This document shows, piece after piece, positions 1-740 of a DNA stretch of 64,000 bases (position 1 is the first letter of the stretch; each line of letters begins with the position of its first letter). The notes beneath the pieces were generated by a model. That model searched no databases. It saw nothing but the letters and a program-made list of their open reading frames with translations, and was not told where the DNA came from. A program made the position numbers and the translations under genes. This DNA comes from Mytilus edulis. Lineage: Eukaryota. Location of the stretch: positions 104,470,001 to 104,534,000 of the forward strand of contig NC_092345.1 of NCBI RefSeq assembly GCF_963676685.1, written 5' to 3'.

Positions 1-740
1 TAGAAATCATATATAATTATACATTTCTACAAGGTGGACGTATCCAGTCCTAATAATAGAAATCATATACAATTATACATCTCTACAGGGTGGACATATC
101 CAGTCCTAATAATAGAAATCATATACAATTATACATCTCTACAAGGTGGACATATCCAGTCCTAATAATAGAAATCATATACAATTACAGATTCCTCTAC
201 AGGGTGGGCATATCCAGTCCTAATAATAGAAATCATATATAATTATACATTTCTACAAGGTGGACGTATCCAGTCCTAATAATAGAAATCATATACAATT
301 ATACATCTCTACAAGGTGGACATATCCAGTCCTAATAATAGAAATCATATACAATTATACATCTCTACAGGGTGGACATATCCAGTCCTAATAATAGAAA
401 TCATATACAATTATACATCTCTACAAGGTGGACATATCCAGTCCTAATAATAGAAATCATATACAATTACAGATTCCTCTACAGGGTGGGCATATCCAGT
501 CCTAATAATAGAAATCATATATAATTATACATTTCTACAAGGTGGACGTATCCAGTCCTAATAATAGAAATCATATACAATTATACATCTCTACAGGGTG
601 GACATATCCAGTCCTAATAATAGAAATCATATACAATTATACATCTCTACAAGGTGGACATATCCAGTCCTAAAAATAGAAGTCATATAAAATAATACAT
701 CTCTACAACCAACCCATCCTGTCCTAATAAAAGAAATTAT
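1..740 (-). repeat. 56/58-bp tandem array (~13 copies, runs off left edge) made of the CDCA7 3' splice site plus exon start
   Basis: Unit tagaaatcatatacaattatacatctctacaaggtggacatatccagtcctaataa. The reverse complement reads tattattag|GAC TGG ATA TGT CCA CCT TGT AGA (DWICPPCR). The 58-bp variants read [14 protein letters not shown]. Confidence 0.95.

Follow-up and report, generated by a model that had tools for sequence, protein, structure and literature searches.

A tandem array of apparent pseudo-acceptor sites at the 3' end of an intron in a mussel CDCA7 homologue

INTRODUCTION

When a 3' splice site and the beginning of the exon behind it are repeated many times in a row, which copy does the spliceosome use, and does the presence of the others matter to the gene? 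This question is raised by one end of a 64,000-nucleotide stretch of DNA from the mussel Mytilus edulis, hereafter the window, where the minus strand of a CDCA7 gene meets a series of acceptor-like units. A reading of the sequence alone had counted about 13 decoy units in window positions 1-740, had placed the full exon to the left of base 1 and had concluded that splicing must skip at least 12 decoys. It further proposed that the array could act as a poison-acceptor switch on CDCA7 dosage or that the allele could be truncated. We have followed up these proposals with the sequence left of the window, with RNA and DNA reads and with comparisons to other CDCA7 proteins and to repeat-bearing splice sites described in other systems.

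RESULTS

The host gene and the exon behind the array

The identity of the gene is based on the PF10497 (zf-4CXXC_R1) profile, which is spread over three consecutive exons, at profile positions 6-34 (29 bits), 35-54 (20.1 bits) and 56-99 (62.7 bits), the exons having been searched one by one and not as a joined spliced protein. The zinc-finger domain is complete and above the curated cut-off, and in a six-frame search of the genome the profile scored at the CDCA7 locus alone (60.9 bits), a single locus being a lower bound. Since three consecutive exons cover PF10497, the gene is a CDCA7 homologue, in agreement with the sequence-only reading. Among 1.8 billion representative proteins, phmmer returned VDI06737.1 of Mytilus galloprovincialis with 100% identity, and many of the mollusc matches are named cell division cycle-associated protein 7(-like) or CDCA7; an alignment of mollusc CDCA7 proteins contains a conserved block that includes CPPCR. 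At the level of sequence comparison, these results support orthology to the animal CDCA7/CDCA7L proteins.

The intron that carries the array is 1626 nt long, with its GT at window 1447-1446 and its AG at L006 2323-2322 (Table 1). The GT follows ...GALKDP in phase 0, which confirms the donor predicted at 1447. The predicted position of the full exon also proved correct, as the exon was found, when the leftward sequence was read, immediately behind the last unit of the array. It ends at a GTAAAC donor, and since both the exon and this downstream donor are intact, the suggestion of a truncated allele is not borne out.

Table 1. Features of the CDCA7 locus and of its array; positions are those of the window unless another sequence is named.
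Feature	Position	Strand	Basis
Part of the array in the window: units 1-13 and tail of unit 14	1..740	-	sequence read, TRF, unit table
First bases of the decoys in the window	723, 669, 613, 557, 501, 443, 387, 331, 275, 219, 161, 105, 49	-	unit table
58-bp units	starts 501 and 219	-	unit table
Unit 1, 54 bp, most degenerate copy, reads DRMGWL*	670..723	-	sequence read, unit table
TACTAAT heptamer, branch-point-like	741..747	-	read from sequence; putative branch point
Part of the 1626-nt intron in the window, removed as one unit in reads	1..1447	-	RNA joint
True exon, 151 nt, directly after unit 16	C2:104469671-104469821 = L002 9671-9821 = L006 2171-2321	-	sequence left of the window, RNA joints
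CDCA7 exon, 63 nt, phase 0 at both ends, donor exon for the array-bearing intron	1448..1510	-	PF10497 positions 35-54, RNA joints
CDCA7 exon, 87 nt, ending ...GVRGQ	2143..2229	-	PF10497 positions 6-34, RNA joints
Upstream CDCA7 exon	2693..2818	-	RNA joints
Upstream CDCA7 exon	3063..3140	-	RNA joints; reads continue from 3140 to an exon near 5034
Acidic/lysine-rich linker and PWWP exons	L006 456-971 and 1-209 (C2:104467501-104468471)	-	PF00855, RNA joints

Anatomy of the array

The minus-strand 56/58-bp minisatellite fills window 1-740 and extends about 180 bp farther left, to C2:104469822. The unit table gives 16 units in total, 13 of them starting in the window, as had been counted, each with its AG and stop, and three (units 14-16) lying left of base 1 in L002; the number of decoys that splicing skips is thus 16. 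Each unit consists of the last 18 nt of the intron, comprising the pyrimidine tract and the AG, and of 38-40 nt from the beginning of the following CDCA7 zinc-finger exon. The pattern ...ttattag/GAC(T/A)GGAT, in which the first slash marks the intron-exon boundary, defines 17 starts in register, namely the 16 decoys and the true exon, so that the latter, with its first 40 nt and its 18-nt intron tail, contributes unit 17 to the array.

TRF describes the repeat at window 1-708 as 12.6 copies of a 56-bp period with 92% matches; higher-order periods are detected as well, at 226 bp with 94% and at 282 bp with 97% matches, and the scores are 1212-1353. Six distinct unit sequences occur in the order a-bcde-bcbde-bcde-b-f, with 100% identity among the copies of any one type. 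Type e matches the true exon at 40/40 nt and type f at 39/40, the sole mismatch being exon base 12, while a 2-bp deletion in types b, c and d creates an early TAA. The unit translations and the 58-bp variants given in the sequence-only reading were reproduced in the unit table.

As 3' splice sites, the units appear well preserved. The AG is intact in 16/16, the acceptor AGs being spaced by 54-58 nt; positions -20..-3 contain 12-13 pyrimidines per unit, compared to 13 at the true site; and a stop codon is reached within 6-14 codons in the exon frame of all units. The acceptor tail of the decoys, TATATGATTTCTATTATTAG, is one base apart from the true one, TATATGATTTCTATTTTTAG. At -7..-3, the true acceptor reads TTTTT and the decoys TTATT, although unit 2 also has TTTTT. 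The array contains no donor-like site better than 5/9 matches, the real donors of the gene having 5-8 of 9. We considered whether units might be used as micro-exons (27 nt followed by GTATAA) and rejected this possibility, as no donor-like site exceeds 5/9 and no such joints occur in the RNA runs.

The unit farthest from the true exon, unit 1, is continuous with the unique intron, and its AG at 725-724 is accompanied by a run of 8 pyrimidines. We read unit 1 as the oldest copy and its AG as the probable ancestral 3' splice site, the exon-like body of which would since have decayed. The candidate branch A of the TACTAAT heptamer lies 19 nt upstream of this AG, and the duplication breakpoint would be located just 3' of the heptamer. 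TACTAAT is absent from the later units, including the one that feeds the true acceptor, since it lies just outside the duplicated segment.

The array as genomic DNA

Could the array, or its copy number, be a mis-assembly of a short duplication? The 100% identity within each unit type could also arise if a collapsed or expanded repeat had been polished to a consensus, and the contigs of X6, an independent DNA run from organism C, fall on bins of the array and cover it in part. An artefact is nevertheless very improbable in our estimation, given that the array, at 0.92 kb, is short relative to long reads and is embedded in a 108-Mb contig, that the ordered higher-order pattern, the six variants and the degenerate first unit are typical of real minisatellites, and that X6 places units next to the same unique flank. 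One X6 contig runs from the unique flank, at L006 3207, into a unit, through a joint from 2422 to 3207 with 4 extra letters and with a first unit that differs slightly; such k-mer contigs cannot size the array. There is thus good support for the duplication as such, while the exact number of units, 16, is that of the assembly.

The array and its flank are single-copy in the 1.37-Gb assembly, and the unit junction had 0 matches among JGI metagenome contigs. A dispersed satellite or transposable element as the source of the unit was ruled out, the array being unique in the assembly and the other match being an unrelated satellite. This sole other match, at C3:69084023-69084647 (L011 1500-2139), has 67-70% identity and is a 31-bp satellite of 20.8 copies (ATAATTGTATATGAGCACTTGTATAATTATA); it has the motif ATAATTGTATATGA in common with the 56-bp units, which we judge to be an unrelated AT-rich similarity.

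Minisatellites are abundant in this region: 11 separate arrays with periods of 27-168 bp were found in the 64-kb window, of which they cover about 5%, so that an array spanning an exon boundary is not unexpected. Two other repeats of the window may be mentioned here, a tandem duplication of 65 bp x 2 at 35028-35156 (87% match, TRF) and, at 11622-14735 on the plus strand, a retroelement of LTR type with gag-like (217 aa) and pol-like (772 aa) open reading frames, located upstream of the CDCA7 exon near 5034.

Splicing across the array

We mapped reads on L006 from X17 (Iso-seq contigs), from X21 and X24 (raw RNA-seq) and from X6 (DNA). The RNA runs are from organism C, a sister taxon, and the best-matching DNA runs are from organism A. 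For the joint between the donor at 1447 and the true acceptor (L006 2320 to 3947, GT..AG, 1626 nt), X21 yields 66 reads with 38 starts, X24 yields 10 reads, and X17 has one Iso-seq contig (depth 11.4) that runs through six exons. RNA depth is 0-0.6 over the bins of the array, compared to 29-150 over the exon bins. In X17, X21 and X24, neither a joint to any of decoys 1-15 nor one that starts inside the array was found at the threshold of at least 3 reads. These junction reads on the true AG, together with the near-zero depth over the array, speak against the use of poison acceptors that the sequence-only reading had envisaged.

Eight reads, in X21 alone, were placed on a joint to decoy 16 (2378 to 3947), flagged "between: not known" and with a shorter side of 39 nt at most. 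The first 40 nt of decoy 16 match those of the true exon except for base 12, which is T in the former and C in the latter, both specifying Cys. A canonical read of a T allele with a short overhang would land on decoy 16 owing to this near-identity outside base 12. The depth of 0.57 in the decoy-16 bin corresponds to 8 reads with 14 nt each in the bin. If decoy 16 were truly used, we estimate that about half of the reads should extend beyond 39 nt on both sides and that the probability for six independent starts to all stay within 39 nt is about 1%. The observed proportion, 8/74, is also compatible with a heterozygous SNP, for which about 10% is expected. The eight reads are thus best read as misplaced canonical reads, even if a decoy 16 usage of about 10% is conceivable. 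In the RNA sampled from organism C with NMD active, canonical splicing is exclusive and use of decoy acceptors is not demonstrated; leaky use of decoys could be hidden by NMD.

The downstream PWWP exons and variants of the gene

The zinc-finger exon behind the array is not the terminal exon of the gene, since splicing continues from its donor at L006 2171 to an exon at L006 971. This joint, found in 69 reads of X21, in 5 reads of X24 and in the Iso-seq contig, is constitutive, and 24 further loose-end reads come from a divergent allele. The exon at L006 971 and the one after it match positions 1-29 and 38-85 of the PF00855 (PWWP) profile. CDCA7 is a sensor of hemimethylated DNA, and PWWP domains are chromatin readers. 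A C-terminal PWWP is likewise present in M. galloprovincialis VDI06737.1 (670 aa) and in a RefSeq model of M. californianus (467 aa), whereas the 8 other aligned mollusc CDCA7 models are devoid of it and stop shortly behind the finger. A PWWP at the N terminus is found instead in an amphioxus protein (P0068) and in an ENA protein (P0011). The word PWWP is absent from the eLife 2023 paper on CDCA7 evolution, and our literature search found no paper linking CDCA7 fusions with PWWP.

Several other features of the gene were observed. The PWWP domain is interrupted by a GC-AG intron at L006 210-455 on the minus strand (...ATGCAAG/gcaagt ... ttacag/GTAGATC), which is documented by 99 junction reads in X21. 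The intron between the finger and the PWWP exons contains, at L006 ~986-1970, a very high-copy repeat with an X6 k-mer depth of 1,900-9,000, compared to about 12 in the neighbouring sequence; a few RNA reads, on both strands, map to it. A 12-bp insertion allele at L006 586 is seen in an X6 DNA contig, in agreement with loose ends of X21 RNA reads at 589. Finally, a coding minisatellite at L002 7213-7707 (minus strand) is polymorphic, with four copies of KISMDNKSSVVPRHKKI in the M. galloprovincialis model (P0001) and a single KISMNKNSPVVPKHKRI in the assembly.

A similar repeat in the CDCA7 model of Mactra antiquata

One representative phmmer match with four matched stretches, the CDCA7-like protein KAL4225701.1 (324 aa) of the clam Mactra antiquata, contains three in-frame copies of a 20-aa unit (EWMC[S/P]...) at residues ~211-270. 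The copies directly follow ...LKNP, at the CDCA7 boundary that matches the intron position of the Mytilus array, and the 60-aa insertion is unique to the Mactra model in the alignment with 8 other mollusc CDCA7 proteins. Judging from its residues, each 20-aa copy seems to combine an exon start of 12 residues with a translated intron tail that ends in Q (CAG or CAA). As viewed from this protein model, the insertion is probably an acceptor array, in frame and free of stops, that was read through when the gene was modelled. We favor independent origins for the Mytilus and Mactra arrays, as their unit lengths and apparent breakpoints differ. Same-boundary arrays in two bivalves could hint at more than neutral drift, but we find the coincidence suggestive rather than compelling.

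DISCUSSION

We propose, with a probability that we put at roughly 0.8, that the array is a real, young and tolerated intronic minisatellite of pseudo-acceptors, which expanded recently and acts as extra intron. It would have originated in a tandem duplication of a segment of about 56-58 bp that covers the 3' end of the intron and about 40 nt of the next zinc-finger exon, and it would then have been amplified by unequal exchange as a higher-order block of 4-5 units. Unequal exchange in a young minisatellite leads to the arrangement seen here, in which identical higher-order blocks come after a single unit that is old and degenerate. As every unit amounts to a near-complete 3' splice-site module, 16 pseudo-acceptors now precede the authentic AG.

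Of these 17 candidate sites, the spliceosome uses only the AG nearest to the exon in the RNA sampled. The true site is not set apart from the decoys by local signals, given that the tails are one base apart and that the tract of unit 2 equals that of the true site, even though the pyrimidine tract of the true acceptor may be slightly better than that of most units. Moreover, unit 1 has apparently the best local 3' splice-site signals, TACTAAT and 8 pyrimidines, better than those of the true site, and yet it is unused, which local signals alone do not account for. We suggest that the discriminator is context, since the true AG alone has the remainder of the exon behind it, with a 5' splice site 151 nt downstream, and cross-exon definition would then recruit U2AF and U2 to the nearest upstream acceptor module. 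The branch point of the true site would now be supplied by exon-derived sequence of unit 16, in which a TGTAAT located about 24 nt upstream is a candidate. NMD is triggered when a premature stop precedes later exon junctions, and any slip to a decoy would create this configuration, with a stop 6-14 codons into the exon and well upstream of the later junctions. The length of the array is probably polymorphic, and its effect on CDCA7 output may well be neutral; no effect of the array on CDCA7 output, on CDCA7 function or on DNA methylation is demonstrated.

Might the array nevertheless serve the gene? If some pre-mRNAs used a decoy AG, met the stop and were degraded by NMD, array length would tune the amount of CDCA7 protein. 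Such a switch, which is speculative, could draw on the AG, the pyrimidine tract and the in-frame stop kept in all 16 decoys, on decoy tails that are one base from the true acceptor and on the 8 X21 reads placed on decoy 16, and its products would be hidden from steady-state RNA-seq by NMD. We consider it very unlikely, because about 76 canonical junction reads and the Iso-seq contig are opposed by no joint to decoys 1-15, because a synonymous T allele and short overhangs suffice for the decoy-16 reads, none of which exceeds 39 nt on the shorter side, and because identical copies indicate a very recent expansion and not a conserved regulatory device. It is very unlikely, in our view, that decoy acceptors capture a share of the pre-mRNAs that depends on copy number and lead to their destruction, so that an array of variable length would modulate CDCA7 output behind the mask of NMD, and that the recurrence of such an array in Mactra reflects selection on this mechanism in bivalves. 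If true, such a modulator would tie a minisatellite to the dosage of a factor that maintains DNA methylation.

Selection could also act on the units as intronic elements that assist the splicing of the true exon, by providing a branch point and a tract or by a kinetic delay. This would account for the comparable array at the same boundary in a clam as distant as M. antiquata, and any nearby branch point of the true acceptor must indeed come from unit 16, as TACTAAT lies 0.9 kb upstream. That the units are kept for this purpose strikes us as very unlikely, however. The 8 other aligned mollusc CDCA7 proteins are without the insertion, and the evidence from Mactra consists solely of a gene model. 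In addition, the units of Mytilus and Mactra differ in length (56/58 versus 60 nt), as do their intron tails (about 18 versus about 24 nt, as deduced from the protein), and the differing breakpoints fit independent events in a setting where, as in the window, minisatellites are frequent.

The tolerated pseudo-acceptor array that we favor has its closest known analogue, as far as its layout is concerned, in the 37-bp VNTR of IVS7 in the human F7 gene, of which it can be viewed as the acceptor-side mirror image. In F7, the first element spans the exon 7-IVS7 boundary, so that the authentic donor is followed by identical pseudo-donors; these are functional yet silent, the most upstream, exon-proximal donor being selected, and experiments demonstrated both the functionality of the pseudo-sites and the length polymorphism (Borensztajn et al. 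2006, PMC1557585). The two loci resemble each other in having a terminal unit that spans the exon/intron boundary, near-identical intact pseudo-sites and use of the exon-proximal site, and the mussel pseudo-sites are likewise silent in the RNA sampled, that is, in a sister taxon with NMD unblocked. However, F7 repeats a 5' donor downstream of an exon, whereas the mussel repeats a 3' acceptor and the exon start upstream of an exon, and with an acceptor as the repeated site the mussel array falls outside the F7 class in the strict sense. The mussel array further differs by its 56/58-bp units, its higher-order structure, its 16 copies and its bivalve host, and it is for F7 alone that the function of the pseudo-sites is known experimentally. 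Our literature search, of incomplete coverage, found no description of an acceptor-side (3' splice-site) VNTR, and we regard the acceptor-side form as a new variant of a known phenomenon.

Other systems share part of these properties. Tandem duplications that carry splice signals are known to create or extend introns (Hellsten et al. 2011, PMC3265369; Lehmann et al. 2010, PMC2891723), and there, as in the mussel, the duplicate is absorbed as intron and leaves the coding sequence as it was. In the published cases, a single duplication of an exonic AG/GT proto-splice site makes a new intron, whereas in the mussel an existing intron is lengthened by a 16-fold array and only its acceptor side is duplicated. 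The likeness to poison exons and alternative 3' splice sites of AS-NMD lies in the premature stop before later junctions that any decoy use would entail; in contrast to AS-NMD, no isoform bearing a premature termination codon was detected in the sampled RNA and there is no sign of regulation or of decoy conservation. NAGNAG tandem acceptors also display multiple AGs at one exon boundary, but these are 3 nt apart, have a common branch point and tract and give in-frame variants of 1 aa, whereas the mussel AGs belong to complete modules that are 56-58 nt apart and out of frame, and so are not of the NAGNAG type.

The biological weight of the array is modest unless NMD-masked use of decoys is shown. 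For the annotation of genomes, the Mactra model suggests a warning, namely that in-frame arrays of this kind get translated into predicted proteins. For splicing itself, the mussel CDCA7 intron offers a natural test bed of 3' splice-site choice, in which 16 near-identical modules are ignored in favor of the one that has an exon body and a donor, and which, in the form of minigenes, may be used to weigh exon definition against local signal strength.
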